A DNA stretch of 64,000 nucleotides from Hydrolagus colliei (Eukaryota): positions 14,632,001 to 14,696,000 of the forward strand of contig CM068756.1 in NCBI GenBank assembly GCA_035084275.1. Reading direction: 5' to 3'. Of this stretch, positions 10,455-59,375 are shown piece by piece. Made by a program: the position numbers and the translations under genes. Under the pieces are notes generated by a model. The model worked only from the letters and a program-made list of their open reading frames with translations. It had not been told where the DNA came from and ran no database searches. The number at the start of each line of letters is the position of its first letter. The first letter of the stretch is position 1.

Positions 10455-10464
10455 CACATTGAAC

Positions 10465-30207: not shown

Positions 30208-30259
30208 ATGGCGAGTGTTGTGTTTCAGTATTTCTCTCTGATGGGGATGCTTTGCACAG
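30208..30259 (+). CDS. R3 leader exon
   Basis: MASVVFQYFSLMGMLCT, ACAG|gtaggt. Confidence 0.85.
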
Positions 30260-33200
30260 GTAGGTAAGGAGTCTGAGGAAAAAGAAGACAGACTAAGCCA
30301 TTATTATTTGTATCAACTCAGCATCAATGTTGCTTTATCCTCATCTATTTATCTCCTGCTTTATATTTCTCTATATTGATTTTCATCGGCATATATTTTA
30401 CTCAATCGGTGTTTGAATTACTTCTGATAGTTGCTGGCGATACTTCGATGAAAGTGACTCAAGTTCCCAGGCGCACAACTACAACCAAAGGTGAAAACGT
30501 CAGCTTCTACTGTGCCACTCCCTTCTTGGAAGACAAATCAGGTATAAAAGTGTACTGGTGGAAGCTTGGGAAGAGGGGGTACCTGCAATCAAGGCCAGAT
30601 CCCAGGAAAATATTTGGTTTCCAACAAGGAGGAAGCGGCTTCTTTCAGCTCCTGGATGTGAATTTCCAGGACTCTGGAGTTTATCACTGCGCTCTGGTGT
30701 TACAGGGGAAAGTAGCAGCAAATGGAACTGGATCCACTTTAACTGTTTTCCGTAAGTGTTAAACCAGCGTAGATCTGGACTGTTACTATCTACACGTGTT
30801 ACCCAAACATAACTAACTAATACACTATACTATAGCGTACACTACACTATACTCTGAAGAGAATCAAAGCTAGACTAAGGGCCACATGTGTGTATATTAT
30901 CTTTAATAGGAAATTTTCCAGTGCCTGGAAAGGAATGACGTTTCCTGATTACCTAATTCTGGAGAGTATTGGTTGGGAAGTGCCAAGACTTGGGTCGCGC
31001 TGGAGGTTCATCTACTAAAGCCGCACCTATATCCAGCATTTGAAACTTTAAGGCACAGTCTAGCAAGCTTCCTCGTGTTTAGGTAGGGCCGACCAACGCA
31101 CCGTTACTTATTTGTCTTGCCCGATTAAACAGGAGCTGAATGGGAAGAATCTCTGCCTCCATGACTGTCTGCCTCTAATCCCTGCCGATGAGCCGGGCTG
31201 TTTGGTCAGCAATGTCCAGGATTTCTCAGGACCCGTCAATGTTAGGAATAGAAATACTGACACAGAGGATTGACGGAGTTCCCACATTCGTTTACTAAGC
31301 GTTTCGCATGGAGTCAGTTCAGCTGCAAGAAGACCCCATGGACCACAATTGGGTCATCATTTAGGCGATACAAACATGGTAAACAAGCAAGTAACCAAAT
31401 CAATGCAAATCAAAGATGATTAATAATAATCCCCCCCAAAAAAGCGCAATAATAAAATTGGTCATTTCAATCCACGACTGTTTGTGGGACACTGCTGTGC
31501 ATAATTGGCTGCCACGATTCGCACAAAAATATACAGTCAATTCACTTTACGGTATATTCTGTGAAGCGCTTTGGGACGTCGATAAGATGTGAAAAGCGCT
31601 ATATCAAAATGCAAGGATTATTATTATTAGTTAATATCGATGGGTGTATTCCGAAATTAATTCGGATATAACTTTACAAATAACACAACTTAGAGTTGCT
31701 CGAAATGTTTGAGATATCTATGCATAGGTGGGATCAATTGAATTCTCAGTTTATTGTGGATACGATTTTAGCAGGTTGTGACGGATTTTCGCATCGATAC
31801 CAGCCACTCGGCTGACTAAAAACAATTGTGGTACGGAATACTTTGGTGAAGACTGAAATAGCAAATAGAAGCTGAGTGTGTTTTAATGCCGCCCGTTTTG
31901 AAAATATTCACTTAAACGTGAACTACATTCTTAAATAATAATGTGCTTCGTGGACTTTTGACAACTGTGATCGCTGGTGAGTGAATAAAATACTATAATA
32001 ATAATAATCCTATCATTTGATATCATGTCTTCTAGTCTCAAACTCTTCATATAATATACTGTAAAGTGAAAGTAAAATGCAAAATACTGCAGATGCAGGA
32101 AATCTGAAGGGAAAACAGAAATCGCTGGGGACACTCAGCCGGCCAGGGAACATCGATACAGAAAGAAAAAGTTTTGCTGCTGAGTGTTCCCGGCGATTTC
32201 TGTTTTTGATACTGTAAAGCGAATTGGCCGTGTGTATATATGGTTGGAAACCGGCAGCCAATTGAGCACAGTGGTGTTCCACAAACAGCCCTGGATTGAA
32301 ATGACCATTTTATTTTTGTTCAAGGGATTATTATTTGGCGTGTGGAGTAAGGGAATTAGCCCAAAGTTTCGCCCTGCTTGGAATCAACCCAGGTCTCTCG
32401 CTTGTAAGGCGACCACTGAGCTACAGGACTCCACATGTGCTATTATCGAGTAACACATTGAAAGAAATATATATATATTATGATCAAGTTTTCGCAAAGA
32501 AATCGGAATAAAATTTTCCTCAGACATTGTGTAATTCAGTTCCATTATCTAATTTACAGTTCCACCAACGCCGCTGAAGATAATCCCAATGTTTACGAAA
32601 CGTAATCCATCTGTGTCTCTGACTCTTGTGTGTCAAACGGCTGTGTATTACCCGGAGAATCTCACCCTGACTTGGTATAACAATGTTACTGAAATTACAA
32701 CCGGAATAAATACCACTGAACAGCAGCATCCAGATGGATTGTGTAGAACTTCCAGCTCACTGGAGGTGGCACCACCTGTCTTGAATGGGACTGTTTATAC
32801 CTGTACTGTATCACACATCAGCCTCCAGGCTTCAGAAATCGCCAATTACACAGTTCAGCTTTCCGGTGAAGGTAATGTGCAAGACATCTTACTGACAATC
32901 TGAACTGTTTTTTTCACACGATTTTTAAATTTATTGTAAAGCTATTTGAGCCTGAATTGTATCACACAATAGCCTCCAGACTTCAACAAAGCTAAAATAG
33001 GTAGTTCCCTTTTCTTAAGAAGTTATCATTTTTAACATACAAGCAATCTTACTGTCATCTATTGTGACTTTCAACATGCATGTTAGAATTGGTTTTAAAA
33101 ATTCTTTAATAAAAAAAACTACAATATTAGATATTAGCAAGGTATTTGCCTCATACAATAGCAACATTTCACTAAAGATAAAAAAAATTCAAACAAAAAC

Positions 33201-33994
33201 ACAACAGCATCTGAATTCTGATGCAACCTGCAACTACTGAAAGTATAAATAAATTCTCGGGTCATTGCCATATTTATTTTTTTAATATTGAATGACGCAC
33301 TCCATCACTTCACCTCGTCTAACGCTGTTATGTTGGAAACGTAAACATAATTATGTCGACATTTAATTGCTGAATTAAATGTCCAGGGCAAGCCAGCTTG
33401 TTTTCTTCACGTACTGCAGCATACTTACAGTAAATAGATTATGGTAAATATTTTCTGCCTGTTGTATTCTGGTTTGCTGTCTGCTAAGCAACAAGCTGAT
33501 GTAAGCATTTAAATTGAATGAAAGTAACAACCTGTCATTAAAATATACTAATTAATACCGAGCAGATGAGCCTTTGCTTTACAGTCTGTCATCTGTGTTG
33601 CACTCGGGCTGCTCTTGTAGCATAAAAGTCACCCTTTCATTGTTTTAATATTGACGGTATTTTCTACAATTAAACTATTCAGTAGATTCTCTTTGTATGG
33701 AATTACAGGACATTGTGTTTTTAAATGATAGCTGTCCCAAAGACTTTTCATTAAGTTTCACAGTTTTAAGTTTACAATTGAGCATCCTATCATGTCGTTG
33801 CTCAGAGGAGTCTAAAAACTGCATTTCAGTTTAAATACACGTAATAATTCATATACATTCTTGTGAATCTGTCGTTACTTTGTTGGTTTAGAGTTCAGCA
33901 TCTACAACATTTTCCGATTTCCATTGAGCGCATTGGTAATGCTTGTTTTGGCGTTTATCGCTGTGGACCATTTCAGAATCTGCCCTATTTAAAG
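30208..33994 (+). CDS. R3: activating-type V-C1-TM(Arg) receptor with no signalling tail
   Basis: Leader 30208-30259, V 30431-30751, C1 32560-32871, TM 33892-33992 (TAA). The spliced ORF is 261 aa with no cytoplasmic Tyr motif. Confidence 0.85.
30431..30751 (+). CDS. R3 V-set (VJ-type) Ig domain exon
   Basis: KVTQVP...FYC...KVYWW...DSGVYHC...ANGTGSTLTVF; 321 nt, phase 1-1. Confidence 0.95.
31990..32432 (-). mobile_element. Deu-type SINE carrying the same hairpin insertion (32071-32208)
   Basis: atactgtaaag(t/c)gaa duplicated at 32056-32070 and 32209-32223; the insert matches the ends of 3549-3747. Confidence 0.8.
32560..32871 (+). CDS. R3 C1-set Ig domain exon
   Basis: LVCQTAVYYPENLTLTWYNN...DGLCRTSS...YTCTVSH; 312 nt. 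Confidence 0.95.
33892..33994 (+). CDS. R3 transmembrane exon with N-x-x-R motif and stop
   Basis: ggtttag|EFSIYNIFRFPLSALVMLVLAFIAVDHFRICPI* followed by AG|gtaagg. It is in phase with the C1 donor and is the only convincing TM-like exon I found between the R3 C1 and the next leader. Confidence 0.8.
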
Positions 33995-34861
33995 GTAAGG
34001 TTTTCATTCATAAATCATTTTGATATAATCGCTGCCATTTTCATTGTTATTTTTTCAATAACATGAAGAGATTTTATATACGTTGACATATTCCATTTTA
34101 CATTTCCATATTTTATTACATTTGCTATGTTTAATTGTGAACTTATTTACTGATTTAATTTTTTAAATATATATCAAGATACGACCTAACTTTGATTCAT
34201 GATGACATGATCAGTAAAGACAATCATGATTAAAACATTTACAATATTCACAATACATTCCGCGTTTGTAGATGTTAGACGAGAGAAACAATGAAAAGAG
34301 ACAGAGGTCTGCTGGTGCAAATAGACTGACTGGAGAAAAAAAGAAAATCTGAGGGAAATGCAAATACTGTATATATCCTAGTTGTTCGGACAAACGAGGC
34401 GGACAATCAGTACACATGAAACCAAATCTTACATTTTTTTTCTTGTTTATCTGTAAACGTGCACTGTTTTCTACGTGGATACAGAAGCATTTACGTTGAG
34501 ATAAAATGTACCTGTGAGTTACCCAGCTAGCCTTCTTCAATGTCGCTCCGAAGATTTTTTCAATAAAATATACCACTGCTGCTGCTGTGTACGTTAATTG
34601 ACAGGTATAATAAACACAAGTATCCCTATGCGTAAAATGATGGCATTTCCAGAAATAAAACTAAATTGCAACAAATGTTTGTGCTTTGTGTTGTATGACT
34701 TGTGTAAACTAAGATGGGAAAAAAAAATTGCAATTTATAAATTATCTGCTAATAAGCATCTGATTTTATTGAGCTTATATAAGGTTCATTAATATACTAT
34801 TATGCTGCATACAACTGTTAGTAGAACAGATTTCCCACAAAATTAATTTTGGTTAAAACTG

Positions 34862-35350
34862 CACCGGGATACGAGACCCCATCACCCCCACCCTCGCCTG
34901 GCTCCACTGGCTCCCCATCCCTCAGGAAATCAAAAATCAAATTCAAGATCCTTGTCCTCACTTTCAAGGTCCTCCATTGCCTTGGCCCCACTTAACACTC
35001 TGACTTACTGACCCCCCTATCAAACTGTCCACTCCCTCATTTCATCAGCCTGTCTTCCATCCAACCCGCCTTACCATCGGTGGCCTGGCTTTCAGCCTTT
35101 CTGCCTCCCAAGCTTTGGAACTCCATCCCACAACCCTCCACCTTGTTTCCTCCCTTGCCTCCTTTAAGACTGGTATTAAGACCCTCCTCTTTGACCATGC
35201 TTTTAGCCGCCACTCTACCTCTCTGCCTTCCCTCATCCCAACCCTGCCTCCCTCCTCCATGCTCCGGTCCTGATCCTTGATTGTCCAGCGTATTGGGACG
35301 TCCTTCTGACATGAAAAGCACTCTACCAATGTAAATTTGTTGTTGTTGCT
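34862..35350 (+). mobile_element. L2 3' fragment
   Basis: ITPTLAWLHWLP..FKILVLTFK remnant and stem-loop/(TTG)n tail. Confidence 0.8.
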
Positions 35351-35754
35351 ATTGCGGACACAAAGGAAGGCTCCTGGAGGTTACATTGATAGCATCTTTC
35401 ATGATCTGTACAAGAGACACTGCAGTTCAATCTGCTAATAATAGCACAAGTGGAATAACTGTCTTTGCTAATTCCTCCAGCCAGAGTCAGTCTCCTAGTG
35501 CAGGAGACACCAAAGTCAAATGACAGCCATATCATCATATTTCATTTCAAACAACCACAAAAAAATTGTAACAGATCAGAATAGGTTCACGTTTACAATA
35601 ATAATAATAATCCTTCCATTTGATATAGCATACAGCAGTGTCTCACAAACAGATATGGATTGGAGTGACCATTTCTTAAGGTATTATTACTCACGAAAAA
35701 GCAATCATCAGTAAAAGATTTTGTATTAAACTGTGATCAGCATCATGATTTGAG

Positions 35755-36090
35755 CCTGTAGCACTTGTAGCACTCTCACCTCTGGGTCAGAAAGCGGTGA
35801 GTTTAAGCCCCGCTTCAGCACTTGGATCACAAAGTCTAAGATGACAATCCAATGCAGTGCTGGGAATGTGTTGCATTGTAAGAGGTGCCACATGTCAGGG
35901 GAGATGTAAAGCTGAGGTCCTGTCTTCCTGTTCAGGTGGACGTCAAATTTCCGTGGCTCAAATTCAAAGAAAAATGGGATTCTCTCAGTTTTCTGGACAA
36001 CAATCACCCAAACAAAATTAGTCACTCACGCCATGGCTGTTTGCAGGACATTCCTTTGTGCAACGCTCAAAAATACAGTCACTCAACTTT
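35755..36090 (+). mobile_element. Old long-form DeuSINE (SacSINE-like)
   Basis: tagcactctcacctctgggtcagaa head; Deu-like core gcagtgctggg...gaggtgcc...gaggtcctgtc...caggtggacgt. Confidence 0.65.
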
Positions 36091-36092
36091 AC

Positions 36093-36630
36093 AATAATAA
36101 TAATAAACCTTGCATTTGATAATAAAAATCTTTGCATTTGATGGAGCACTTTTCACGTCTTCTAGACGTCTAAAAGTGCTTTACAGAATTTACTGTAAAG
36201 TGAATTGACTGTATATTTGTGGGCTAAATGCAGCAGGTAATTGCACACAACAGTGTGCAAACAGACAAACAGTCTTGGATTGAAATGAACCTTTTTTTTA
36301 GGGATTATTATTAGGTGTGTGGAGTAAGGAAACTTTCCGAATGTTTTGCTCTGCCAGGAATTGAACCCAGGTCTCTCGCTTGTAAAGCAAGTGTTCTAAC
36401 TACTGAGCTTTAGGACCCTATAATATAGTGCTATATATAATGTGGAGTCCTTCAGCTCAGTGGTTAGAGCACTTGCCTTGCAAGTGGAATACCTGGGTGC
36501 AATTCCAGACAGGACCTTCGGCAGGTTTCCTTATACCACATGCCTCATAATAATTCCTCAAAACAAAAAATTGGTAATTTCAATCCAAGACTGTTTGTGG
36601 GACACTGCTTTGTGCACCTGACTGCTATGT
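36093..36630. mobile_element. Two Deu-type SINEs head-to-head (36093-36418 minus, 36444-36630 plus)
   Basis: Family matches in opposite orientation. Confidence 0.8.
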
Positions 36631-37009
36631 ATAATTTTATTTATTTTAAAGGAATTATTACTCTCAGAAAAGCAATCCACCAATCAACTATGACTTGGGT
36701 TACTACTTACTGCTAGGTAAACAAAGATATGTGGAGTAAAGAAACTTGCCCAGTGTTTCACTCTGGCGGGAATGAAACTCAAGTCTCTCACTTGCGAGGC
36801 AAATGCTGAAACCACTGAGCTACAGTAATCTTTTCAAAATCACATTGATCAATCTATTTCTCTGTAAACTCTCACTCGACCTCTCCATTCACTCCAGTTG
36901 CCGACAAATCACCAATTTGGCATTCATCTCCAAGATGCTTGAATGTGTCATTGTCTCCCATTTCACTCCTTCCTGTATGATAATGACAATAATAATCCAA
37001 CAATAAAAT

Positions 37010-37410
37010 GACATTTCTATAGCACCTTTCTCATCAAGAGGAGATCCCAAGGCACTGAACAGTGAGTGGTTCTGGGGGCGGATTTGGGGAGGGTGCAAGG
37101 AAGGGAGGGGAAGCTGGGGTGACCAATGGCACCGTCGAAGAGTAAGGTCTTGATGCGGGATTTGAAGGAGGTCAGGGAGGGGGCAAGACAGAGGGATTGC
37201 AGAGTGGAATTCCAGAGGTTGGGTGCTGAGTGGCTGAAGGTTCACCCGCTGATGATGGTGTGGGTGGATCAGGGAACATGGATTTTTCTGAAGCCTGACC
37301 AGAGGGTGTGGACAGGTTTTTAGGGGAATAGGAGGTCACACAGGTAGGATGGGGCAAGTACATGGAGTGCTTTAAAAGTGAGGACCAGGATCTTGAATTG
37401 AAATAATAAT
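37010..37410 (-). mobile_element. L2 3' fragment
   Basis: Reverse complement of the L2 3' region and tail. Confidence 0.75.
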
Positions 37411-37764
37411 AATTTGTTGCATTATAGATCTCCCACGAAGTTACTCCATTGTTGCAAAGAAACATTCCTGAGGCTTTAATGTGTCATTGCTATTTCGAGT
37501 CAACAATTTTAATTGAGTGAAGCAATGCGGAAATCTATGTGAATTTCAATTCTGGTAAAGCTTTTATCTTTATGGACAATATGATAAGTGATTTAAGAAA
37601 TCGTTAAGTAGGGTATTGTCTCTGCAAATCATACCCAATCAAAATTTATCCATTGGTAACAGGAAGTCAAAACCCAGTACCACCGATCTCATGTCAAAAC
37701 AAAGCAAGCTCTCATTACAGACCTGTGAGACACTTACGATTAGCCTCAGGCAGTGATCAGCATG

Positions 37765-38440
37765 ATGGCGAGTATTGTTTTGCAGTGCCTGTCTTTCGAA
37801 GCGATAATTTCCAAAGGTGTGTGCTTACAATTTTCAGAATACAAATGTAGTCATTATAAAGCATTTACGAGTAATTTTCCATAAAGCCTCTTGATATAAT
37901 CCTTAAGTCATCAAGTTGTTAAGACATCTCAAAGCGCTTCACAGGAATTTTCTGTGAAGTATATTGCCTGTGCATTTGCCTTGCGTAGAATTAGTCTTTT
38001 GATGTAGAGTGAACAAAGTATCTATTAGGTACTGAATGCATTTCTATGGTTCTTCTATTTTACTCTTCCTTTCACCCACCTATGAATCTTAAGCATTGAG
38101 TGTTCAAATTTATTTCTGATAGTTATTGATGGTACATTGATTGAAGGGGCACAACAACTCAAACACGGAATTCCAATCATAGGTGCAAACATCACCTTCT
38201 ATTGCATTTTTACCATCCGTCCAAACAATACACGCATAAAAGTGTACTGGTGGAAGCATGGGGAGAGTGGCTACCTGCAAACAAGAGCAGATAACAGAAA
38301 AATATTTGGTTTGAAGATGCAGGAAACAGCTTCTTCCAGCTTCTGAATGTGAGTCCCCAGGACTCTGGTCTATATTATTGTGCGATGGTCCATGAGGGAA
38401 TCATAATACGAAATGGATCTGGATCATTTAACTGTATGCG
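37765..38440 (+). pseudogene. R4: leader + frameshifted V exon pseudogene (R2-like V)
   Basis: Leader 37765-37816 (MASIVLQCLSFEAIISK); V 38123-38440 carries a 1-nt deletion (premature TGA at 38344-38346) and a 2-nt deletion relative to the R2 V. No C1 or TM exon found downstream. Confidence 0.85.
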
Positions 38441-38949
38441 GTAAGTATGAATACTTGAAACACTCTTGAACATTACAACATCAGCAACAACAAAATTACA
38501 TTTGTAGAGTGACTTTCACATGGGGAGTGACTTTCACAGCCCAAGGCTCTGATTTACACAAATAAATTGAACAAATGGCATGAAATAGTTTAGTATTCAT
38601 TACAAAATATTTATTATATAACAAGTGGAGATTACGGTGGTAGAATAAATTAGAAATGTAATCTAATTTTAAAAATCCTTAAAATATTTAGAAATATTCG
38701 TTAAAATATAATTCCTTAAAATTCCATAAATATTTTAAGGAATTTTAAAATGCCAATATTACTGAGCCATTGAGATTAACTGTTAGTTTCTTTATTCCGC
38801 ACTAGTCACTGCTATTCAGGTATGGCTGAATTTATTGCCATATAAGGACATAAATGACAGCAGTTTTAAAAGAAAATGATTTTTGACATTTAACTAACCG
38901 TAATACTAACTCCATAGATTCCTTAAATAAAATAATAGCCACAAACTCT

Positions 38950-39530
38950 GGAGTCTTGTAGCTCAGTGGTTAAACCACTCGCCAAGCAAGCGACCCGGGT
39001 TCGATTCCAGGCAGGGCGAAAACTTGGGTAAATTCACATGCCCAATAATAATCCCTCAAGAATAATAATAATAGTAAATTTGTCACTCAATCCACGACTG
39101 TTTGAGGACACGATAGAGTGCTATATCAAATACAATTATTATTAGTAACTTAATATAGGAAGGAACTATAAAACAACAGCAAGTGGTGAAATTAACCTGT
39201 AAAGTTGGTTGTCACCAGTACTCAACACTTGAATGGAGAGTATACCCAAGTCAGTTTTTGCATACGTTAGTGAATCCTTTAAACGGATAAGCACTGCTCT
39301 GCAAACAATAATCCTTGAATTTCATACGGCGCTTTTCACGTCTTGTAGATATCTCAAAGCACTCCACAGAATACAATGTAAAGTGAAGTGTCTGCATTTT
39401 TCTGGGTGAAATTGTGACAGCCAATTGCGTGCAACAGTGTCCCACAAATAGACTTGGATTGAGAGACCAAATTATCAATGGGGTTTTTTTATGGATTATT
39501 ATCAGGTGTGTGGACTCCTGTCAAATTGAA
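38950..39530. mobile_element. Two partial Deu-type SINEs (38950-39142 plus, 39305-39530 minus)
   Basis: Family matches. Confidence 0.75.
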
Positions 39531-40042
39531 ACCTGGATGGCCAGTGAATGAAAGCCATTGCAAAATGTAGTTGGATACACATTCCATGCATTTCTCTACC
39601 ATTGAAATGATTGGAAAGTATAGGTGTCCTCTGGCCTTTCGCATCCCTTTGCCTTTAATACCTCCTACACATCTACTTTTTCAACCAAGCTTTCGAACAT
39701 TTTCGATCATCCTCAGGACTGCACCCCCATCCACCCACAGACTGGGGATCACAGTCACAATATGCAACATTTATAGTTTATACATTTATTATTTATAGTT
39801 TATAGTCCAAGTTTAAACAACAAACTTACATTCATATAGTGCCTTTCACGTTGGGAGGACATCCAACACACAATATAAATGTAAATTATAATACATTGCA
39901 CTTGAGCTGATGTTGAGAATTTCATTCGAATTGTTTTTGGGTGGTTTGGACATTAATGGCTACATACTGGTAGACATCAGTAGTCACACCATAGCCTATG
40001 TGCTAGACCCGTGGCATGACTTTGGTCTCTTAAAATACTACA

Positions 40043-40343
40043 AATAATAATCCTTGCATTTAATAAAGCACTTTTCACATCTTCTAGATGTCTCAAAATA
40101 TTTCACAGTCTATACTGTAAAGTAAATTATCTGTATATTTGTGGGAGAAACACAGCAGCCAATCGCACACAGCAGTATCCCACAAAATTTAGATTGAAAT
40201 GACAATTTTTAAAAACAAATTTGAGGGATTATTATCAGGCATGTGGAGTAAGAAAACTTGCCCAAGGTTTCACCCTGCCTGGAATTGAACCCAGGTCTCT
40301 CACTTGCAAGGTGAGTGCTCTAACCATTGAGCTATAGGACTCC
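40043..40343 (-). mobile_element. tRNA-derived Deu-type SINE
   Basis: Full-length family match. Confidence 0.85.
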
Positions 40344-40529
40344 ACTAACAAACCTCACTGATTCCCTAAAAGCTGAGCAAATACTTTCAGGTGCCCAAAA
40401 GGATAAGGTAGCTTACATATCACAACGGCATAATAACTGTCTCTAGGACTTGATTTACAATCTCCTTCACATTTCACAACTACAACAAATGACATTTATA
40501 TTGTGCCTTTTATGTTGTGCTGGACCACC

Positions 40530-40935: not shown

Positions 40936-40939
40936 GATT

Positions 40940-42500: not shown

Positions 42501-42727
42501 TGTTGATATGCAGGTTGTTTTAACCCTTCCCTGTTTAACCCTCCCTGCACAACCCTCCCTGCACACTGCCTGACTCTCTCATATGCACTTGTACATCAGT
42601 GATTAGAACAAAGCATTGCTGTGTATGTATAGTCCTTGTGGAGGTGCTTTCTCAATGTGCATCTTTGCTGCTAGTGACTGTCAGCGATTGGTTTGCTTGT
42701 TTATTTACTTCCAATAAAAGTTAAACA
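42501..42727 (+). mobile_element. Possible solo LTR
   Basis: TGTT...AACA termini, AATAAA at 42713, near-TSD ttta/ttca, internal aaccctccctg repeats. Confidence 0.3.
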
Positions 42728-45506: not shown

Positions 45507-47816
45507 AAATAGTGACTGTATTACCTTTAAAATCATTCAAACAACTATAACTGTACCATGAGTTGAAACGTTTTTGCCTGGATTTGTACAGAATTCCAAC
45601 TCTTTAGCAACCGCTATCAGCAACCAAAAGCCTGATCTATTCATACCACAATTTCTCCCAAAATACGCCACTGCACCTTACATTATATCTCTTGAAGAGG
45701 TTTGGGATACTCCCGTGTGAAGAGTGCTGTACGAAATGATTAAAGGATTAAGAAAGATTGTAAGGATTTTGAGAATTATTATGATTATGTTATCTGTCTA
45801 AACCAGGTAAAAAGTGTAGTACAAATGCTCAATGGATTTTTAAACTGCATTTAAAATAATGTCTCAAGAACAAATAATATGTTTATCATATTGTTTTATT
45901 CCCCTGTCCTTGATTAATTAGTGATGGATTAATTGTGATAGAACTAAACTGTGAAACTTCATCAAGAAATGAGAAACAGGAGGTTCAAAGCAATAAAACT
46001 AAAACAGTTATTCACCCGTATATGTTTATGCACTAACTCAACACCGGTTTCCTTAACCTCATAATTATTTCCCCAACATTAATTTTAAAAACTCGTAAAG
46101 AAGGATCATGTTGGGATTGACAACACCTTCTTAACCTTTTGTTCAGCGGGTTAGAAGCAGTCTGCAGAAAATATTTATATTCACTATGCGTTGTGAGTGA
46201 GAACGCTGGGTGGCTGATAGGATAGTAAATCCACGTTCACAGTCGTCATACAAGTAACAGTTCTAAATACTGTATCCTTTAAGAAATACAGCCATAACCA
46301 GCAACTGGTTTGGGTATTGGGTTCAGATATATTGCTTAAAACGCTTCAACCTTATTGAAAAATTTGAGAGCATATACATCACTTTAGCCAGTTTCTTAGA
46401 ACATTTACACACCGTCTAGATAAGGCAATTATGGAGCCCACAAAACGACTTATTATCAGTGCTTAACCCCTGAGCAAATTACCTACAGTGTAACCTGTTC
46501 AATCATTTTCTTTGCATCAACAAATAAAACTCTAGAAATGTATTTTAAAGTAATGCCTGTGGAAGTCGCGTGGAAGTTAATAATGTAGGACAATTTCATA
46601 GAAGAAATGAAGTTTGAATTCAATATAATTACACAGTCTAAGTTGGTGACCAGGGAACGATAAGATCAACCCAATGAACTCACCGTTGATTGGAAAGCCA
46701 CCCTTCTATCTTGGTTTGCTTGTCCGGGAAGCTGACACATGACCGTTCATAAGTAGGCAAACTAGCCGGAGTTCCACTTTCTTTCTGTGGAATGGAATTA
46801 CTCTCGAGTCTGAAATGAAACACACAACATCTCCCTGGAGGAATGTATCCCGCTTACCTAATTCTGGAGCTCTGGCTTGTTGACAAGAGCCGAGACAGTT
46901 TGTGGTACTGACAGCGTTTAACAGGCTAATGCCGTGCAGATTGCTATGTGAGAGGACTGTTTAGCAAACCTCCCGCTGCTTATCCGGCTGGAACCTCACG
47001 ACCAATGAGAGCTTCACTGTGCCAGGTTAACAGGACCCCTGTACACGAAGGAGACCGCAAACCTGTCCTTGTATTAACGCTGAAACCGTGTGCAAAATAG
47101 CTGCCGCTAATAGTCACAAAACCAGCCGCAGTGAACTTCTGCAAGACCAAGTTAAGCCGACAAACCGTGTTCTGTGTTTATCACGAGACGAGACGCTGAT
47201 GTTGAAAGCTATATTAAGAGTTGCTGTGACGCTCAGCAGAAACCACACGGGAAACCACTCGGCGCAATGCAGTTTCCTGTTGTGACAATGCAGCGGCTCG
47301 GTGTCTGTGAGAACGCCTACAGTTTGACCTTTTAACAGCGGCCGCGGTGGCGCAATCTGATGTCAACCCGTTTCCAGTTAACTATTTGTGATCACACTCA
47401 GATAGAGGCGAATGCGATATCGGTGAAGCCGGGGAGTGACTCTCAATGTCAGTAGTAACTGCACCTTGAGATATGGATAACAGTTTCACAACCATACAGG
47501 TGAAAGTAGTTTTTTAAAATGAACCCCCTCTCCGCTGTCCTAATAAAACTATAGGCTCTGCAAACATTGGCGAGAAGCCTGGGTAGTTTACAAGTATACA
47601 CTATTACAAACCACAGCAGTACTGCACCTGATACCTGTTATTCAGGAGAACACGATTCTTCAATGTCACACTGAACCCCAGTAAACACTTGCAGAAAATA
47701 TGTTTAAGGCAATAAAACCACAATACTCCTATCTATTTTGCTCCCTTTTTGCACTAAAATAAATGAATGTAATCCAATCAATACCATGCTTATTTATTGA
47801 TGTAGTAGTCTTATTG

Positions 47817-49093
47817 GGACCCCTCCAATCAGGTTTCCGCCCTATCCACAGCACAGAAACTGCCCTGGTTAAGGTCACAAATGACACCCTAACCGCCTGT
47901 GACCAGGGCTCCCTCTGCCTCCTCGTCCTCCTTGACCTGTCTGCTGCGTTCGACACAGTCGATCACACCATCCTCCTCCAACGTCTTTCCTCCCACCTCA
48001 ACCTTCAAGGCACAGTCCTTGACTGGTTCCATTCTTATTTGACCCACCGTTTACATTTTGTTTCTTCCAACGGTTTCTCTTCAAACCCCCGCACAGTTTC
48101 TCACGGCGTCCCTCAGGGCTCTGTTTTAGGCCCCCATCTTTTCACCCTTTACACCCTCCCCCTGGGCGACGTCATCCGCAAACATGGGGTAAATTTCCAC
48201 ATGTATGCGGACGACACCCAATTGTACCTTTCTGCCTCATCCCTCAACCCCCAGACGATCGATGTTCTGACAGCATGTCTGTCCGACATCGAGTCCTGGA
48301 CGAGGGACAACTTTTTGCAATTGAACGTGAGTAAGACCGAGGCCCTCCTGATTGGCTCAAGCCAGCGCCTCCGCACATCGGGCGCTGCCAGCCTCAACAT
48401 CCAAGGCTGCACTCTCCACCTCACAAAGCCAATCAGGAACCTCGGCATCATGTTCGATCAAAAACTTTCCTTCCTCCCCCACATCCGCGCCTTGATCGGC
48501 ACCGCTTATTTCCACTGCGCAATATTGCCTGGCTCTGCATTCACAGGCTGCAGGTCATCCAAAACTCTGCAGCCCGTGTATTACCCCCCCCCGCCTCCGC
48601 GACCATATAACCCCCACCCTCGCCCGTCTCCATTGGCTCCCCATTCTCCAGAGGATCGAGTTCAAGATCCTCGTCCTCACCTACAAGGCCTTACACAGCC
48701 TTGCCCCGCCCTATTTAACCAATCTACTTTCCCCCTACAAGCCCACCCGGACCCTCCGTTCAACAAGACTTGGCCTGCTCCAAGCCCCCCGCCCGAACCG
48801 CCCCACCATCGGAGGCCGGGGCTTCAGTTTCACTGCTCCCACCCTATGGAATGCCATCCCTCAATCCCTCCGTCTCGTTTCTTCCCTTTCCTCTTTCAAG
48901 GCCGGTTTGAAGACTTTCCTCTTCGATCGTGCCTTTTGTTCCATCCCGAATTTTTCTACCTCCCCTTCGTGTTTTACCCCGTCCCAAACACTCCCCTCTC
49001 AGCTCGGGTCACATGCCTCCTGTGCAGCGCCTTGGGACGTCCTCCCGACGTGAAAGGCGCTCTATAAATGTAATTTGTTGTTGTTGTTGTTGT
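47817..49093 (+). mobile_element. Young L2 LINE, 5'-truncated, with RT domain
   Basis: [45 protein letters not shown]; ~100-bp internal deletion relative to the 60.6-kb copy; (TTG)n tail. Confidence 0.95.
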
Positions 49094-51624: not shown

Positions 51625-52330
51625 TAACAACAACAACAAAATTACATTTATAGAGTGCCTTTCACATCGGGAGGACGTCCCAAGGCATTGAACAGTTAGG
51701 TCAGGACCTGAGCATGGGGTGGGGCGAGGGGTCGGGGTAGGGGGAAGGAGAGTAGGAGATGGGGTATATTTAGGAGGGGAGCAGAAGGCACAGTCAAAGA
51801 GATCGGCCTTGAAGGAGGAAAGGGAGGAAGCAAGGCGAAGGGATTGTGAGATGGCGTTCCAGAGAGTGGGGTCAGAGAGGCTGAAAGCCCGGCCACCAAT
51901 GGTTGAGCAGTTAGGGCGGAGGACGTGGAGCAGGCCAGAGCCTACTGACTGGAGGGTGCGGGCAGGCTGATAGGGAGACAGCAGGTCAGATAGGTGTGGG
52001 CAAGACAGCGAATGGCCTTGAAGGTGAGGATGAGGATCTTGTATTCGATCCACTGGGGGATGGGGAGCCAATGGATATGGACAAGGGTGGGAGTGATGTG
52101 GTCACTGAGTCTAATGTGGGGAGTCTAGGGTCGTGGAGCCTAGTGGCCTGCTCCATGTCCCCAGGCAGGGGACGTGGAGCAGGCCAGAGCCCGCTGAACA
52201 GAGGAGACAGGCAGCCTGATAGGGAGACAGCAGGTCAGAGAGACAGGTGGGGACAAGGCTGTAAATGGCCTTGAAAGTAAGGACGAGAATCTTGAATTCG
52301 TCCCTCTGGCGGATGGGGAGCCAGGAGATG
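51625..52330 (-). mobile_element. L2 3' fragments (two partially overlapping segments in tandem)
   Basis: Reverse-strand L2 3' region; the segment at ~51920-52070 is repeated in diverged form at ~52170-52320. Confidence 0.75.
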
Positions 52331-54574
52331 AATGAGGAGAATCCCTGCTCGAAGTGACTGGTTTACCCTTCCAAGTGCTCCTGGTGAGACAATCTGACTG
52401 CTTTGGCATCAGCATTTCCCTATGATATCTCATGTCCATTTGTCTGAGGAAAGGGACTTCTGAGAGCATCACTGATAATCAACTCATTGCCAACATGCCA
52501 TTGGCAAACATGCCACCATAGAACCTATTCAACTATAATCAGATCTCTCTCTTACCTTCCCCCAAGGATTACAGATACTACTTCTACATTGGATATTTCA
52601 CATCTCTGGCAGCTAACGCTTTAAACTTGTCGCCTTCTTTTCAGCTCAAGTGCTGACTGCATCAATCTATTTCATGCCACGGAGTCAATACAGACACCTG
52701 GAGTCTTGTTTGATGCTTTAGTATGTTTCAAGCCCTACCTCGGTCCTCACTCACTCTAGGCTCCCATTCAGTCAACACTCCCTCACCTTCGTAACTGGAG
52801 TTTCTTCGGCACTTCTCAGACCATCATTCATGGTTTCATCACATACAACCTTGATTAACCCAACGCCCGCTTGTGGAGTTCTCACCTTAACCAGATACAA
52901 TCTTGTGTCTATTCACATCTTTGCAGCCCCTGCCCTCTCCCGTAACAATAGCCAACCTATGAATGAAATCCACAATGGTTTCCCACCCCACAGCAGATCC
53001 CCACCATGTAAGCAACTTCCTGATTGACTGAAATGCCCCTTTACCCCAGGGATCAGGAGTCTAATTCACATCTCCTGCCTTATTGTCCTTCCTCACCATA
53101 ATAGAGTGAGCTGTCAGTCATTCTGCTGCCGCTGTTTGGAACTCCATTCTATGGTCTCTCGGGTTTTCTAATTTGCTCCCAATGTTCAAAGCGCCTTCAA
53201 AACCTACTGCTGACTTATCTTTCACTTCATTTCCTTTTGCCCGTTCCTAATTTCTCCTTGAAATCGCCCACAGACAGATATCTATATGATTTGAGGTGTT
53301 CCCCCCCCCCCCCCCCAATAGGAATGGCGCCTTCCAAATGCAAATTGTTTTCAAATCGTAGGTCTTACATCCCCGGAAATGCTGCTGATATTCAGATAAT
53401 TTCATTCACAAACTATCAATCTGGCCAAGCACGGCAGATAAAAGAACTTTGCATAAAAGTTTCATCCTAATCTCATTCTTTCTGGTTGGAACAAATCAAT
53501 TTTTCAACCCAAAAGTTGCACAGTGCTTATCAAATTATAGGGAGCTCAAATAGTGATTATTACAATATAATTATTCACATATACACGTTAAATTCTCCTT
53601 CTGATTTATTATCTCCTGCAGTCAGGAAGTTTCCACCAAAGTATCCCAATTACTGATAAACACTGTGTACAAAAAATGAATGAATGTCTGGGTATACCAA
53701 AAATCATTATATAGTTCTACTTGGAGGTGAACTTTTTTTTGTATGTGCTTAAAGGATGTACATTGTTACTCTATGTATAATTTGGCCCCCAAATTGTATT
53801 GTCGATCTGAATGAGAATTGTTAATACATATTAAGTTTACTCCGAATGTGTTGTTCTAATGCAGCAAACCGTTTCATTTTGAACAAGAAAAAGCTGAAGA
53901 AATAATGTTTAATTTCAAACGAATATATTTTGTTCATTTGTGAGACAAACATGAGAAACTTAAAAGAACAGAAATCGGGATTAAAACTACTACATTTTAG
54001 CAAAATACAAAAGACAAGCCACTGAACACATGAAGCAAAAAGATCATCATTGGTCCATAAATTCCTAAATCTCTTTTTAATCTCGTTTTAATCTGTAAAG
54101 AATATGTTGGTACTTCGGTCGTCCAAAAATTGAAAATGTATTCGTTTATTATAATGTGCCAAATTAAATGGTTTCAAATATATATTTTCTAGAGAATTGA
54201 TTACTTGGATGTACAATACTAAGAATGATCTAATAGCACAACAAAATATATTAATTCACTCGATTTTTGACAAGGTCCCTTCAAGTGGTTCCATTCGGCA
54301 TGTTACAGTTGGAGGAAACTGTTGGGAATGATGTCTTTCGAAATTAAATTGGGTTGTGTACCGTCGGGAAAATAATATTCAGACGTTACACTGAGGAGCT
54401 ATCAAGCTGTAGAACGAGATAATAGTTCGAAGAGTGATAGCAGATGTATTGTAAATTTCAGAGGCAGTTCACCTTTCATTGTGATTGGCAGATCATCATT
54501 TTTGGACGCTCTTCAGGTAGACCGTAGCTTTTTGCAAATGGCAACCAATTAAACGTGGATTGCTTGATCTACGG

Positions 54575-54612
54575 AGACAGGATGTTAAACGTCATTGCCT
54601 CACATTCATTTT
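54575..54612 (+). promoter_or_regulatory. R5 proximal promoter block (ETS-like ACAGGATGT + ACGTCA half-CRE)
   Basis: Paralog of 30117-30154. Confidence 0.4.
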
Positions 54613-54678
54613 GCCATCTGCCACCCCTTAATACAGACCAGCAGTGAGTTCAGATAGTCTCAGACAGTGAGCCGAGCC

Positions 54679-54730
54679 ATGGCAAGTGTTGTGTTTCACT
54701 GTTTCTCTCTGGTGGCGTTCCTTCCCACAG
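54679..54730 (+). CDS. R5 leader exon
   Basis: MASVVFHCFSLVAFLPT, ACAG|gtaggt. Confidence 0.85.
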
Positions 54731-57700
54731 GTAGGTGCTGCGTTTACTTACAAGGATAGTTGTTTTCATCCATATACTAACCTATGCGCTCTGGGACGCT
54801 AGCTCGAGAGAGAGGCGGTAGATGAATGCAAAATGTTGTAAACAAAGTTTCGTGGCTTCATGTTCAACTCCTTACCCCCATGCTTTGTATTTCTCTGTAT
54901 TCGTTTTCAAAGGCTAGATATTTTACTCAATCGGTGTTTGAATTACTTCTGATAGTTGCTGGCGATACTTCGATGAAAGTGACTCAAGTTCCCAGGAGCA
55001 CAACTGCAACCAAAGGTGAAAACGTCAGCTTCTACTGTGCCACTCCCTTCTTTGAAGACAAATCAGGTATAAAAGTGTACTGGTGGAAGCTTGGGAAGAG
55101 GCAGTACCTGCAAACAAGGCCAGATCCCAGGAAAATATTTGGTTTCCAACAAGGAGGAAGCGGCTTCTTTCAGCTCCTGGATGTGAATTTCCAGGACTCT
55201 GGAGTTTATCACTGCGCTCTGGTGTTACAGGGGAAAATAGCAGCAAATGGAACTGGATCCACTTTAACTGTTTGCCGTAAGTGTTAAACCAGCGTAGATC
55301 TGGACCGTTGCTATCTACACATGTTACCCAAATACATCTAACTAATACACTATACGCCTAAGCAAATCAAAGCTTGACTGGGAGCTAAATGTATGTATTC
55401 TACCGACATTCGGAAATGTTCCAGTATCGAACCCTAACCCAATGCTGTGGAGGATAGGGTATAAATGTGGAGGATAGGTCAGAAAATGCCAAAGGTTGAC
55501 AAATGCCTATCCAGCACTTGAAAGCATTGTCTGGCAAACTGCCTGCTGTTGGTAAAGGAAGGACAAGCCCACATTTTACTTACTTGTCATGCAGTGTTAA
55601 ACAGGAGCCAATTGGGAATAATCTCTGCCCCTCTGATCTCTAATCCCTGCCAATGAACCCGGCTGCCTAGTCTGCCATCAGCAAAGCTATGAGGACCTGT
55701 CAATGTTAGGAATGGGAATACTGACACAGAGGATTAACTGAGTTCATACACTCAGCTGACTGAAGAAAAAACAGTGGAACTGAATCCTTAACTTGGTGAC
55801 AACCGAAAGAGCAAAATAGCAGCTGAACGTGTTTCAATGCCGCCTGCACCAGCCTTTAGGCTGAAGTGATTTACTTAACTGTGAACTGCATTCATAATAA
55901 ATAAGATTGTTTCATCACTTTTGGCAACTGTGATTGCCGGAGAGTAAAGAAAACGCTATTTCTGAGTAATTATTTACATACAAAATGTATAAATCAGATC
56001 AAATTGTCGTGGAGAAATTGATCGGATATAAATCGAAATTCAATTTTCCCAATTAAATAGAGGTTATGCAATGTTGTTCCATCATGGAGTCTTGTAGCTC
56101 AATGGTTAGAGCATTCATTACAAGCGAGAGACTTGGCTTCGAGTCCCGGCAGGGCAAAACCTTGGGCAGGTTTCTTTACTCCAGACAACTAATAATAATC
56201 CCTAGAGAGAGAGATAAAATAATAAATTGGTCACTTGAATCCATGACTACTTGTGGGACACGGATGTGCGTAATTGGCCGCTGTAATTTGCTCACAAATG
56301 TATGGTCAGTAAACTCTGCAGTAAATTCTGCAATACACGTTGAGGCGTATCTACGTGAAAAGTACTATATGCAATGCAAGGATTACTGTTTTTATTATTA
56401 TTACCTAATTTACAGTTCCACCAACGCCGCTGAAGATAATCCCAACGTTTACTAAACGTAATCCATCTGTGTCTCTGACTCTTGTGTGCCAAACGGCTGT
56501 GTATTACCCGAAGAATCTCACCCTGACTTGGTATAACAATGTCACTGAAATTACAACCGGAATAAATACCACTGAACAGCAGCATCCAGATGGATTGTAT
56601 AGGACTTCCAGCTCACTGGAGGTGGCATCACCTGTCTTGAATGGGACTGTTTATACCTGTACTGTATCACACATCAGCCTCCAGGCTTCAGAAATCGCCA
56701 ATTACACAGTTCAGCTTTCCGGTGAAGGTAAATGTGCCAGAAATCTTACTGACAATCTGAAGAGAATTTTCACCTGATTATTGCAATTGATCGTAAACCC
56801 GATTTCTAAATATTTTAAAAGAAAATCCGCTTTTTGGTTAAATATATTAGAAATGTAGGTATATGTGAGTTATTTTCCACACAAAAAAACGCACTAAAAA
56901 CCTAAAATTGGAAATTTGATACTCTACCAGAATCTCTATTCCGGCGCAAGCAAACCGAAGTTAATGGAACTATAAGTTAGTTAGCGGGCCAGAAACATAT
57001 TGTGTTGAGAAAATGAATGAATGATTCACACCAGAATGTGTTTTTATCTTACCATTTAGAATTGAAAAAATATTGGATCGCTGGATGTGCAGGGGGTGCG
57101 TTGATATTTCTAATAGCTTTAATCATCATTGGGAAGCGATGCCAATTCACAAAACTGAGAGGTAAGAAATAAGTTTCTATTGAAATTAAATTGTAGTATT
57201 TTTAATTATAATTGAACGTTTCATTGGGTAAATGAGTCAACGCCGGGTGCTGCGGTGGGAAAAGAGGTTTGAAGACAAATGTCTGTGTAGCTCCGCGAAT
57301 GATTATGAAATATGAAGAAAGGTCAGAATTTCTATTCGTTCTAGTCCACAGGTTATTTTAAATTCCTGCCGTGGAAATTTGACACATATTTCATTAATTT
57401 ACTTTCGTTAATTTTAGGCTCCCATAGAAAAAATAATGGCTCACATCGTTCTGCAGAACAGGTAATTATAATTTGTACTTTTCTCAGCACTTTGTCACCT
57501 TTCAAGCAGAGATTAATGTTCTTTATAATGTTATAGCATTTTCCCACGAAACATTTTTATAACTTGCACGCAAATATTGAGCAGCAAATGTAATATAGTA
57601 CGGTTTGTTAGTAGTACATATGATAAGTATTCCAAAATATTTTCAATTGATTTAAAGAGAATATTAATATATTAGACTGGGCAGTTGAAGGTGGGTCACT

Positions 57701-59375
57701 GCGGAGTTGCACTCGGTGTTCAGGCAGCAGTGTGGATTCCTGTAGCTCTGTGGTAACCACACTCGCCTTGCAACCAAGATACCATAGTTCAGTTCCCGAC
57801 AGGGCGAACTGCTGGGCAAGTTTCCTTACCTCTTACCTCTATTGCCTCTGTTTACCCGGCAGTAAGTAGGAGCAGTTGATCACTTTTCAAGGGATAACAA
57901 TCCTTAAAAATAACTATCATAATTTGGTCACTGGATCTACGACAGTTTGTGGGACACCGCTGAGTGGCCGTCGTGTTTTGTCCACAAATGTACAGTCACT
58001 TCACAGTATATTCCGTGAAGCGCTTTGATTGGCTAGAAGACATGACAAGCGCTGTATTAAATGGAACGATTACTATGATTGTGTTCAGAACTAAAGACAA
58101 TGAACCAATCATGGAACTAGGAGTTATGTGTTACCGACTGGGCGGGGGGCTCACTGTGAGATGGCTTACATCGCATTGGATTTGATAAATTCCCAGAAAA
58201 CTCAAAGACCTAAATATCAGGAAAGGACAGCGCACACCCAGGTGAGGAACACTGAGTTTAAATATTAGTCATTTATATCCGAAAACATTTTTGGATTAGA
58301 AAATAAAATGGAAAACAGTTGTTTACCTCAATATTACTGTTGTATTTCACCCTCCTCGAATTGTTTAATTCCAGTTGCCTGGCTGACTGGCAGGTCATGT
58401 AATTGGTAGAGTTATACAAACCCTTCACTACTTATCAAAATAATCATTCTTAATATGAATCTTAGAGACGAGTGATATATGTCCTCAGAAGCACAGCTTT
58501 GGAATTTTAGCGATTGTCGACTAACTGAGTTCCCATTTCTCTGCCAGCCTTATGGAAATGTATAGAAGCTTCTATCAATCCCATCTCAACATGAAAAATA
58601 ATTCTTAACTCGTAGTTTTTAAAAAGTAAACATTGTATAGGGAATGCTGGGGATTCTGAAAGCATTTATTTGGGAGATTACTGCAGTCTGACAGCATTAA
58701 TAAATTAGTTACATTTACAAATACTTGCTTTTCTACGCAAAGGGAGCAAACAGGAACAAGCCAACATATGCATCTCTGGATTTCTCTGGCTCTAAGAAAA
58801 CAGGAAAGGCTAAACCTACCTACAAGAATACGGAATATGCCGAGGTAAGCTTGATAAACCATCTGGAGCTAAGAGTCAAATATGTTAAAATACTAGGTGT
58901 CAAAGCTGATTATTGGTTTGTGTTAGGCATGCTCCCTATGCATTGCAATCAACATCTCCATTACTGCAGCATGTCCAGGATGGTAGAAGACAATTTAGAT
59001 GGACCTTGGTCTTTTACAAATATCTTCTATCTATCTAATAATATTTATTAACTGAATTATATATTTATCACACATTTCATCAATCAATATAGCTGACATG
59101 TAACAACAACAAAATTACAGTTGTATAGAATTATAACTAGAAGAAAGACAATCAATGCAATCTTATAAGTAGTATAAATATTTAGCAGAGGCGTAAAGTA
59201 ACTAAAACAAAGACCTCACAGTATACTGAACCTTTGTCTTTACTAGGTCAAACAAGGGGCAAACAAGCTGACTTATGCTGCTCTGGATTTGGGTAGCGCA
59301 ACGAAAATGGGAAAGCCTAAATCCAACAAGAATACACAATATGCAGAGCTACAGATGAAAACTACAAACGTATAA
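54679..59375 (+). CDS. R5: inhibitory SIRP-like V-C1-TM-ITIM/ITSM receptor, complete
   Basis: Leader 54679-54730, V 54956-55276, C1 56416-56727, TM 57060-57161, linker 57418-57461, degenerate module ~58161-58241, modules 58743-58844 and 59247-59375. ORF is 353 aa when the degenerate module is skipped. Confidence 0.88.
54956..55276 (+). CDS. R5 V-set (VJ-type) Ig domain exon
   Basis: 8 nt different from the R3 V exon; ends ANGTGSTLTVC. Confidence 0.95.
56086..56402 (+). mobile_element. Deu-type SINE immediately upstream of the R5 C1 acceptor
   Basis: Family match; absent at the paralogous position in R3. Confidence 0.8.
56416..56727 (+). CDS. R5 C1-set Ig domain exon
   Basis: 8 nt different from the R3 C1 exon; FYP-like YYP, W, YTCTVSH. 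Confidence 0.95.
57060..57161 (+). CDS. R5 transmembrane exon (uncharged)
   Basis: ELKKYWIAGCAGGALIFLIALIIIGKRCQFTKLR; 102 nt, GAG|gtaaga. Confidence 0.9.
57418..57461 (+). CDS. R5 44-nt cytoplasmic linker exon
   Basis: GSHRKNNGSHRSAEQ; ttttag| acceptor, CAG|gtaatt donor. Confidence 0.85.
57734..58078 (+). mobile_element. Deu-type SINE upstream of the degenerate R5 module
   Basis: Family match. Confidence 0.8.
58161..58241 (+). pseudogene. R5 degenerate Tyr module (pseudo-exon or cassette)
   Basis: MAYIALDLINSQKTQRPKYQERTAHTQ|gtgagg is homologous to module 1 of R1/R2. The second Tyr is now His and there is no good in-frame acceptor. Confidence 0.6.
58743..58844 (+). CDS. R5 Tyr module (PTYASL + TEYAE/V)
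   Basis: GANRNKPTYASLDFSGSKKTGKAKPTYKNTEYAE|gtaagc, a strong donor. Confidence 0.8.
59247..59375 (+). CDS. R5 terminal Tyr module (ITIM LTYAAL + TQYAEL)
   Basis: tactag|VKQGANKLTYAALDLGSATKMGKPKSNKNTQYAELQMKTTNV*. Confidence 0.85.
   Translation, partial: VKQGANKLTYAALDLGSATKMGKPKSNKNTQYAELQMKTTNV

Follow-up and report, generated by a model that had tools for sequence, protein, structure and literature searches.

Paired receptors with matched ectodomains have been described in several vertebrate groups. Primate Siglec-5/-14, Siglec-11/-16, KIR2DS/3DL and CD300A/C have ectodomain exons that were homogenised by gene conversion while their signalling ends differ (PMC4042635, PMC5701461, PMC2768862, PMC12447643). 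In Xenopus CEACAM pairs, conversion is confined to the ligand-binding exon and its splice signals, with near-zero synonymous differences beside strongly diverged introns, and it was followed by rapid nonsynonymous change on the CC'C''FG face (PMC5112662). For cartilaginous fish, the MDIR molecules of skate form a different family with activating and inhibitory members (PMC3031540), and the UrIg protein of elasmobranchs is reported in the extracellular matrix in a paper that never uses the word ITIM, for immunoreceptor tyrosine-based inhibitory motif (PMC12227049). Here, we analyzed a gap-free 64-kb window of the holocephalan Hydrolagus colliei (contig CM068756.1, positions 14,632,001 to 14,696,000), in which five related immunoglobulin-superfamily units, R1 to R5, form a tandem cluster, all on the + strand, with copies of short and long interspersed elements (SINEs and LINEs) between them. 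Two of these units, R3 and R5, are quite probably a pair of activating-type and inhibitory-type receptors that goes back to an old duplication, and whose V and C1 exons were later matched by two short conversion tracts.

Conversion-matched paired receptors recur throughout mammalian innate immunity and are also known from frogs; what sets R3/R5 apart is its place in the phylogeny and its clean two-exon pattern. Like the primate pairs, it appears to combine an inhibitory ITIM receptor with a partner that has a charged transmembrane (TM) segment; unlike R3/R5, which is known from sequence alone, the primate pairs are mammalian, belong to other domain families and come with functional evidence on ligands, adaptors and pathogens. 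The Xenopus CEACAMs are another immunoglobulin-superfamily family, in which the paper stresses opposite orientation of the partners and in which the activating partner has tails with immunoreceptor tyrosine-based activation motifs (ITAMs), or ITAM-like tails, and not a charged TM segment (PMC5112662). R3 and R5, in contrast, share one orientation at a spacing of 24 kb, and their V and C1 exons were converted separately. What is added here is a second class of TM exon, conserved in Callorhinchus milii, and a dating of the events against that species.

Exon models were built for R3 (261 residues) and R5 (380 residues). Every splice site in them is AG/GT, and the R3 reading frame is intact over four exons. 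Their outer limits reproduced the coordinates 30208 and 59375 given in an earlier note on this DNA. The exons are as follows.

30208-30259, + strand: R3 leader exon, MASVVFQYFSLMGMLCT, phase 1, differing from the R5 leader at 9 of 52 nucleotides (nt)
30431-30751, + strand: R3 V-set exon with a J-like GTGSTLTV motif, differing from R5 at 8 of 321 nt, all nonsynonymous
32560-32871, + strand: R3 C1-set exon (Pfam C1-set, 45 bits), differing from R5 at 8 of 312 nt, 4 synonymous and 4 nonsynonymous
33892-33994, + strand: R3 class II TM exon, EFSIYNIFRFPLSALVMLVLAFIAVDHFRICPI, with the stop at 33990-33992 and a consensus donor, GTAAGG, two bases on
54679-54730, + strand: R5 leader exon, from the exon model
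54956-55276, + strand: R5 V-set exon, from the exon model and the comparison with R3
56416-56727, + strand: R5 C1-set exon (Pfam C1-set, 52.5 bits)
57060-57161, + strand: R5 class I uncharged TM exon, ELKKYWIAGCAGGALIFLIALIIIGKRCQFTKLR, homologous to the TM exons of R1 (1822-1935) and R2 (18027-18128)
57418-57461, 58161-58241, 58743-58844 and 59247-59375, + strand: R5 cytoplasmic exons, with MAYIAL, PTYASL, TEYAEV, LTYAAL and TQYAEL

By Pfam, R3 and R5 each have a V/Ig domain and one C1-set domain; the C1-set score of 52.5 bits stands against a cut-off of 21, the V-set score of 24.1 falls just below its cut-off of 26, and Ig_3 passes. The TM span of R5 reads YWIAGCAGGALIFLIALIIIG and is uncharged. 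In the R5 tail, LTYAAL is a canonical ITIM, TEYAEV and TQYAEL resemble immunoreceptor tyrosine-based switch motifs (ITSMs), and MAYIAL and PTYASL complete a set of five, where the earlier note had counted four to five tyrosine motifs behind an uncharged TM segment. R3 ends in IFRFPLSALVMLVLAFIAV-DHFRICPI-stop, and the model agrees with the note in having an Arg within the TM segment and a stop 8 residues past the hydrophobic stretch. Thus, R5, like R1 and R2, would be of inhibitory type, with an uncharged TM segment and a long tail in which the ITIM LTYAAL and further ITSM- or ITIM-like tyrosines resemble the tail of SIRP-alpha. R3, with its class II TM segment, its Arg, its VDHFRI end and its stop, would have the architecture of receptors that couple to adaptors through a charged TM segment. 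Similar ectodomains, an ITIM-type tail set against a charged TM segment with a short tail, and location in one cluster make up the paired-receptor architecture that the note had put forward, and our models support it as a predicted one. The labels 'activating' and 'inhibitory' are taken from motifs alone and denote predicted types. The note had also raised the alternative that R3 transcripts use an ITIM tail. No ITIM-tail exons were present downstream of R3, and a search for relics of them between R3 and R4 returned only repeats; R3 thus lacks any inhibitory tail that it could be spliced to.

Two details of the R5 tail were observed in addition. Its last two exons (58743-58844 and 59247-59375) are tandem duplicates with 57% amino acid identity (17/30), and its first tyrosine exon (58161-58241) has lost the second Tyr (ERTAHTQ), which R1, R2 and shark relatives keep (ERTVYAQ). 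The acceptor of this first tyrosine exon has a weak pyrimidine tract, and its 5' edge is therefore the least certain boundary of the model.

The match between R3 and R5 is limited to two tracts. These are listed below together with the repeats and the relic that lie around them.

30393-30807, + strand: V conversion tract of R3, enclosing the V exon and corresponding to R5 54918-55332, with 11 differences in 415 positions against 156 in 496 for flanking homologous sequence
32544-32905, + strand: C1 conversion tract of R3, enclosing the C1 exon and corresponding to R5 56400-56762, with 12 differences in 362 positions; similarity is gone past about 32940
31422-31633, no strand assigned: SINE in R3 intron 2, with multi-copy self-matches and no counterpart at the matching position of R5
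32209-32436, no strand assigned: second SINE copy in R3 intron 2
56085-56403, no strand assigned: SINE in R5 intron 2, ending where the C1 tract has its 5' edge
32951-32985, + strand: 35-nt relic of the 3' part of a C1 exon, in R3 intron 3 only, matching 32800-32834 at 30 of 35 positions

The encoded V and C1 domains of the two receptors are 94% and 96% identical. A recount of the V, C1 and leader differences gave exactly the numbers in the earlier note. The note had put the intron identity at 38 nt before V and about 80 nt after it, and we measured 37/37 upstream and 58/64 downstream, the island reaching about 55-64 nt; beside C1 the corresponding values are 15/16 and 31/34. Its estimate by eye of introns about 70% identical is close to the 68.6% and 75.5% found in the first two homologous blocks (127/404 and 47/192 differences, with 26/85 in a third), and the SINE insertions do differ between the copies as it had said. 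Its proposal of exon-limited gene conversion held as well. The bounds of the V tract come from a maximum-likelihood segment search, in which 0 of 200 permutations reached the observed score, and the two tracts pooled have 26 differences in 784 positions, compared with 200 in 681 (about 29%) for the introns (Fisher p = 2e-46). A sliding identity profile, made on a repeat-stripped global alignment, showed two islands of 96-100% on a diverged background, with 60-85% in the alignable introns and about 40-50%, that is, no homology, past C1. The uniformly high intron identity that the note had associated with a simple recent duplication was not seen. In their exons, R3 and R5 have a synonymous divergence (dS) of 0.027 (4 changes in 149 sites), more than 10-fold lower than the Jukes-Cantor (JC) divergence of the introns (0.30-0.41, about 0.37); other paralogue pairs in the window have a dS of 0.74-1.08.

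Discrete tracts of high identity, with homologous but diverged sequence on either side, are the pattern by which interlocus conversion is recognised. Since synonymous and intronic sites are homogenised, purifying selection on the protein is excluded, and since an intron about 30% diverged and carrying different SINEs lies between exons that are 97% identical, so is a recent duplication of the whole gene. Identity extends into the introns on all four sides, which identifies the template as genomic DNA and excludes a spliced cDNA. We read the R3/R5 exon match as interlocus gene conversion from this genomic template. An account without conversion, in which the exons are alike because the whole gene was duplicated recently, because purifying selection was strong, or because the assembly is collapsed or chimeric, strikes us as very improbable indeed. 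Its duplication and selection variants are already contradicted by introns that are 25-31% different and hold different SINEs, by the homogenised synonymous sites and by the identical intron flanks. Mis-assembly of repeated gene clusters classically yields paralogous exons that are nearly identical, but the copies differ at 26 positions and identity fades gradually at the tract edges, which a collapse would not give, and we consider an assembly artefact unlikely.

The two tracts are equal in age within error (2.65% and 3.3%) and have diverged intron between them, as would follow either from two near-simultaneous conversion events or from one discontinuous event. Beside the V tract, identity is intermediate, 78-90% at 30332-30393 and 82-94% at 30752-30850, and these zones may reflect nested events of different ages. 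The tracts probably end where SINE insertions and intron decay break homology. The 5' edge of the C1 tract lies at the end of the R5 SINE (56403), as expected if heterology stops a tract. Exon-limited tracts can arise simply from exons alone having kept enough homology, and the pattern by itself does not prove selection for matched ectodomains. The relic at 32951-32985 bears on the direction of transfer. Its local alignment score of 45 compares with a maximum of 28 in 500 shuffles (blastn E = 2e-5), it sits just past the end of the R5-like sequence at about 32940, and R5 has no such relic. In the simplest reading, R5-type sequence was written into R3 and displaced the end of an older exon, and R3, judged from this one short feature, was probably the conversion recipient.

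The time scale of these events was obtained from C. milii. Window positions 334-13056 are collinear with positions 10944-27750 of a C. milii locus (L002; MU249845.1, about 15.64-15.657 Mb). Collinearity spans introns as well as exons, and it includes 8 kb of intergenic sequence. The locus is that of XP_007902824.2 (P0029), and R1 is, on this collinearity, clearly the orthologue of that gene. Non-coding divergence between the species is p = 0.188 (JC 0.216) over 4580 aligned bases, which places the window in a holocephalan other than C. milii. Since the R3/R5 intron divergence of about 0.37 exceeds this distance of 0.22, and the tract divergence of about 0.03 falls below it, the duplication looks older than the genus-level split from C. 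milii and the exon matching far more recent. The leader-to-C1 halves of R3 and R5 would then derive from the old duplication, and the two tracts would have homogenised their V and C1 exons, along with a few dozen intron bases around each, at a much later time. No database protein was identical to a product of the window; the closest were C. milii proteins. Against its closest C. milii relative (P0001), with which it shares the TM exon and the first tail exon, R5 is 65% identical in V and 83% in C1, compared with the 94% and 96% that it shares with R3. We interpret this greater nearness of R5 to R3 than to P0001 as concerted evolution acting on a fast-evolving V domain.

We also asked how far the TM exon of R3 sets it apart from the other receptors. 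An exon-plus-TM filter (a phase-1 open frame behind a pyrimidine-rich acceptor, a Kyte-Doolittle mean of 2.3 or more over 19 residues, and a GTRAG donor 75-150 nt further along) was run over both strands of the window. On the + strand it returned exactly four sites, the TM exons of R1, R2, R3 and R5, and on the - strand two false positives; about 0.08 chance sites are expected in the 5 kb after the R3 C1 exon. The TM exons of R1, R2 and R5 are homologous to one another (z = 10-20 against shuffles). The R3 TM exon aligned with those of R5, R1 and R2 no better than shuffled sequence, in agreement with the note, which had called the R3 and R5 TM exons unrelated. A diverged R5-type exon was ruled out as its source by comparison at the nucleotide and protein levels, and an origin from a repeat was rejected, the sole hint of one being a 28-nt match with E = 0.09.

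A tblastn search of C. milii loci taken around annotated relatives, with R3 as the query, gave two matches.

L002 328-441: C. milii class II TM exon, reading GVDGKLYEFAICRFALCICVILLLVIVTVDHFRITSL-stop (E = 6e-5)
L003 746-862: C. milii class II TM exon, reading DSSPMFNNMMIFRFILCFLVVIVLTVFIVDHIRIKPLER, then a donor with no stop (E = 1e-5)

In the reciprocal search of the window with these exons, the sole match was 33885-33995. All three class II exons have an invariant Arg in an (F/C)RF context and an invariant VDH(F/I)RI end, and the residues around the Arg vary. L002 and R3 share the identical strings GTGGACCATTTCAGAAT and TTTAAAG/GTAAGG (the slash marking the donor), and the coding sequence of a called C. 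milii C1-set gene of 302 amino acids (aa) ends at the same class II stop. Given this conservation in C. milii, a chance open reading frame (ORF) does not account for the R3 TM exon. By exon homology and residue content, the family thus has two TM classes, class I being uncharged and leading to a tyrosine-motif tail, and class II having an Arg and an Asp-His. In both species, and in two of the three class II copies, the stop lies two bases before the donor (33990-33994; L002 439-443), which, together with the read-through copy in L003, suggests an intron in the 3' untranslated region or an ancestral longer tail.

Several other members touch on this TM class. A C. milii class II TM exon lies about 9.5 kb upstream of the XP_007902824.2 gene, and there is probably an activating-type gene just upstream of the present window too. 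The first exon of the C. milii 302-aa gene (L001 3537-3608, - strand) reads MVQNFAVEFQYEVEADAVNLMEMK, which is not a signal peptide, and the 5' end of the public model is probably in error. Members from a ray (P0010, Hemitrygon akajei) and a skate (P0012, Leucoraja erinacea) combine an Arg in a TM segment that otherwise looks like class I with short tails lacking tyrosine motifs; these may represent separate origins of a charged TM segment, or the gene models may be truncated.

The membrane span of R3 has its Arg in the outer third, no more than two residues into the run of strong hydrophobicity FPLSALVMLVLAFIAV, and ends in Asp-His. Such a placement, with the Arg at the membrane interface, would suit an R3 that is functional and does not activate, i.e., a short-tailed non-signalling, adhesion or decoy receptor related to R5 as SIRP-gamma is to SIRP-alpha. 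We regard this as improbable, because the Arg is invariant in the three class II exons while neighbouring residues vary, and because a TM Arg occupies a similar position in NKp30, NKp46, Fc-alpha-RI and GPVI, which couple to FcR-gamma or CD3-zeta.

A somewhat stronger, though still minor, contender accepts the conversion as real and takes R3 for a dying or silent truncated copy that was overwritten by its neighbour, so that there would be no functional pairing and no selection for alike ectodomains. To polarise the changes since conversion, R1, R2 and R4 were used as outgroups; 4 changes were assigned to R3, all of them nonsynonymous, and 6 to R5. One of the R3 changes replaces with Cys the Tyr of DGLY, which is otherwise kept in all C1-bearing members aligned. 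The decay of genes in this cluster is exemplified by the neighbouring R4, a frameshifted lone V exon. Together with an overall dN/dS (nonsynonymous to synonymous rate ratio) of about 0.94 since conversion, these observations are in line with an R3 that is being lost. Opposed to them are the intact frame and canonical splice sites of R3 over four exons, and the retention of the class II exon, its Arg, the VDHFRI end and the stop before the donor between species that are 19% diverged in non-coding DNA. R5, moreover, has changed as much as R3 since conversion. A comparison with P0001 had hinted at asymmetric evolution of R3 only; this was dropped in view of the counts of 4 and 6 obtained with the window paralogues.

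Some of these observations and several others weigh against R3/R5 as a conversion-matched activating/inhibitory pair, and we gather them here. R3 could be silent, and it has the Tyr-to-Cys change in its C1 domain. The dN/dS of about 0.94 and the V differences (8 nonsynonymous to 0 synonymous) fit relaxed constraint as well as they fit diversifying selection on binding. Demonstrable rounds of conversion number one per exon. The Asp at the inner end of the R3 TM segment is atypical of adaptor-coupled receptors. Word-indexed protein searches, with the R3 TM region and with a query into which the C. milii TM exon had been spliced, did not match any annotated class II protein, and the class II TM exon was not found in one Heptranchias and one Heterodontus locus, a sample of two and too few to indicate its absence from elasmobranchs.

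Under the long-term dN/dS of the family, about 0.4, an outcome of 8:0 in V has a chance of about 0.01, estimated from site counts. The V changes fall in or beside the BC (L/F), C'-C'' (G/Q, S/T) and FG (V/I) regions, which we take to correspond, in the alignment with SIRP-alpha, to the ligand-contact loops of that receptor. This excess of nonsynonymous change, several of the changes lying in BC, C'/C'' and FG, resembles what followed conversion in the Xenopus CEACAMs (PMC5112662). An extra, apparently unpaired Cys also distinguishes the partners. In R5 it is that of LTVC at the V-C1 junction (55274), which is present in P0001 as well and has been lost in R3 (30749); in R3 it is that of DGLC in C1 (32743). 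The difference could alter covalent dimerisation between the two receptors. If R3 and R5 are paired as we propose, they may share a ligand, and the matching may have a selective reason such as a counter to ligand mimicry.

Next, we compared the family with known receptors. Among solved structures, the family profile matched shark UrIg2 best (1.6e-28), followed by human SIRP-alpha (5.5e-24, with V and C1 both aligned) and an IgA heavy chain (2.1e-23). An exhaustive phmmer search of 1.84 billion representative sequences with the R5 tail gave 14 matches, none of them a tetrapod SIRP; the 10 that were looked up are all chondrichthyan and the other four look like members of the same family. In the NCBI pipeline, several members from sharks and rays are called 'tyrosine-protein phosphatase non-receptor type substrate 1-like', i.e., SIRP-alpha-like. 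The earlier note had supposed a chondrichthyan V-C1 family that it did not recognise as described. The chondrichthyan, and here holocephalan, placement stands, and the automatic names mean that the family is not wholly unrecognised. No paper describing this V-C1 family was found in literature searches, and it is absent from the UrIg papers.

UrIg and UrIg2 share with R3/R5 a non-rearranging VJ-C1 architecture and an occurrence in cartilaginous fish, UrIg2 being also the top structural match; the UrIg proteins differ in having several C domains, whereas the present family is V-C1-TM with signalling ends (PMC12227049). The SIRPs have more in common with it. Both are type I TM receptors that have an N-terminal V domain, whose J-like strand reads G-x-G-T-x-L-x-V, and then C1-set sequence, and both lie in one gene cluster. 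The inhibitory tail shows the rhythm TYAxL ... TEYAxV/L among its several YxxL/V motifs, and the partner combines a basic TM residue with a tail that is very short; SIRP-alpha is also the best non-shark match of the family profile among solved structures. On the other side, there is one C1 domain here and there are two in SIRPs, the R3 Arg lies near the outer face and the Lys of SIRP-beta in mid-membrane, immunoglobulin heavy and light chains score almost level with SIRP-alpha in the family profile, and the resemblance of the tail to that of SIRP-alpha is at motif level only. Orthology with SIRPs is thus not established, and the likeness appears to be one of architecture and tail motifs.

A broader proposition, which we put forward tentatively and hold to be rather less likely than its negation, is that this SIRP-like V-C1 family is an undescribed ancient paired system, in which the class II TM exon is a dedicated activating module and the ligand-binding exons are repeatedly re-matched by conversion to fast-evolving inhibitory partners. 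If true, the strategy of an inhibitory receptor with a converted activating counterpart would date back to the base of jawed vertebrates, and the SIRP family might have its root there too. On the narrower reading of R3 and R5 as a converted pair, a clean holocephalan example would show that the genomic mechanism, and probably the host-pathogen logic as well, is present in the deepest living branch of jawed vertebrates. A chondrichthyan family so far only labelled automatically gains a name and a structure, and the conserved charged-TM exon could serve to trace activating members and the adaptor that they use through other cartilaginous fish.

The window contains only members of this receptor family and repeats. 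The remaining units are as follows.

R1, + strand: V exon beyond the window, C1 at 579-875, uncharged TM at 1822-1935, and a tail of three tyrosine-motif exons
R2, + strand: V at 14796-15104, C1 at 16337-16657, uncharged TM at 18027-18128, and tail exons at about 21.6 and about 22.5 kb
R4, + strand: lone frameshifted V exon at 38107-38446, with no C1, TM or tail

The frameshift in the R4 V exon lies near 38310-38316, and the nearest relative of this exon is the R2 V exon (76.6% nt identity). Downstream of it there is no C1, TM or tail exon. R4, which lies between R3 and R5, looks like a gene fragment or pseudogene.

Finally, one LINE family is represented by copies at 47763-49092, 60815-62190, 25814-26313, 18623-18970 and 10600-12200. 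An ORF of 434 aa at 47763-49067 has reverse-transcriptase motifs, and two copies, downstream of R4 and of R5, are 92-96% identical. The GC-rich, C-skewed stretches in the composition profile of the window are due to these LINE copies.

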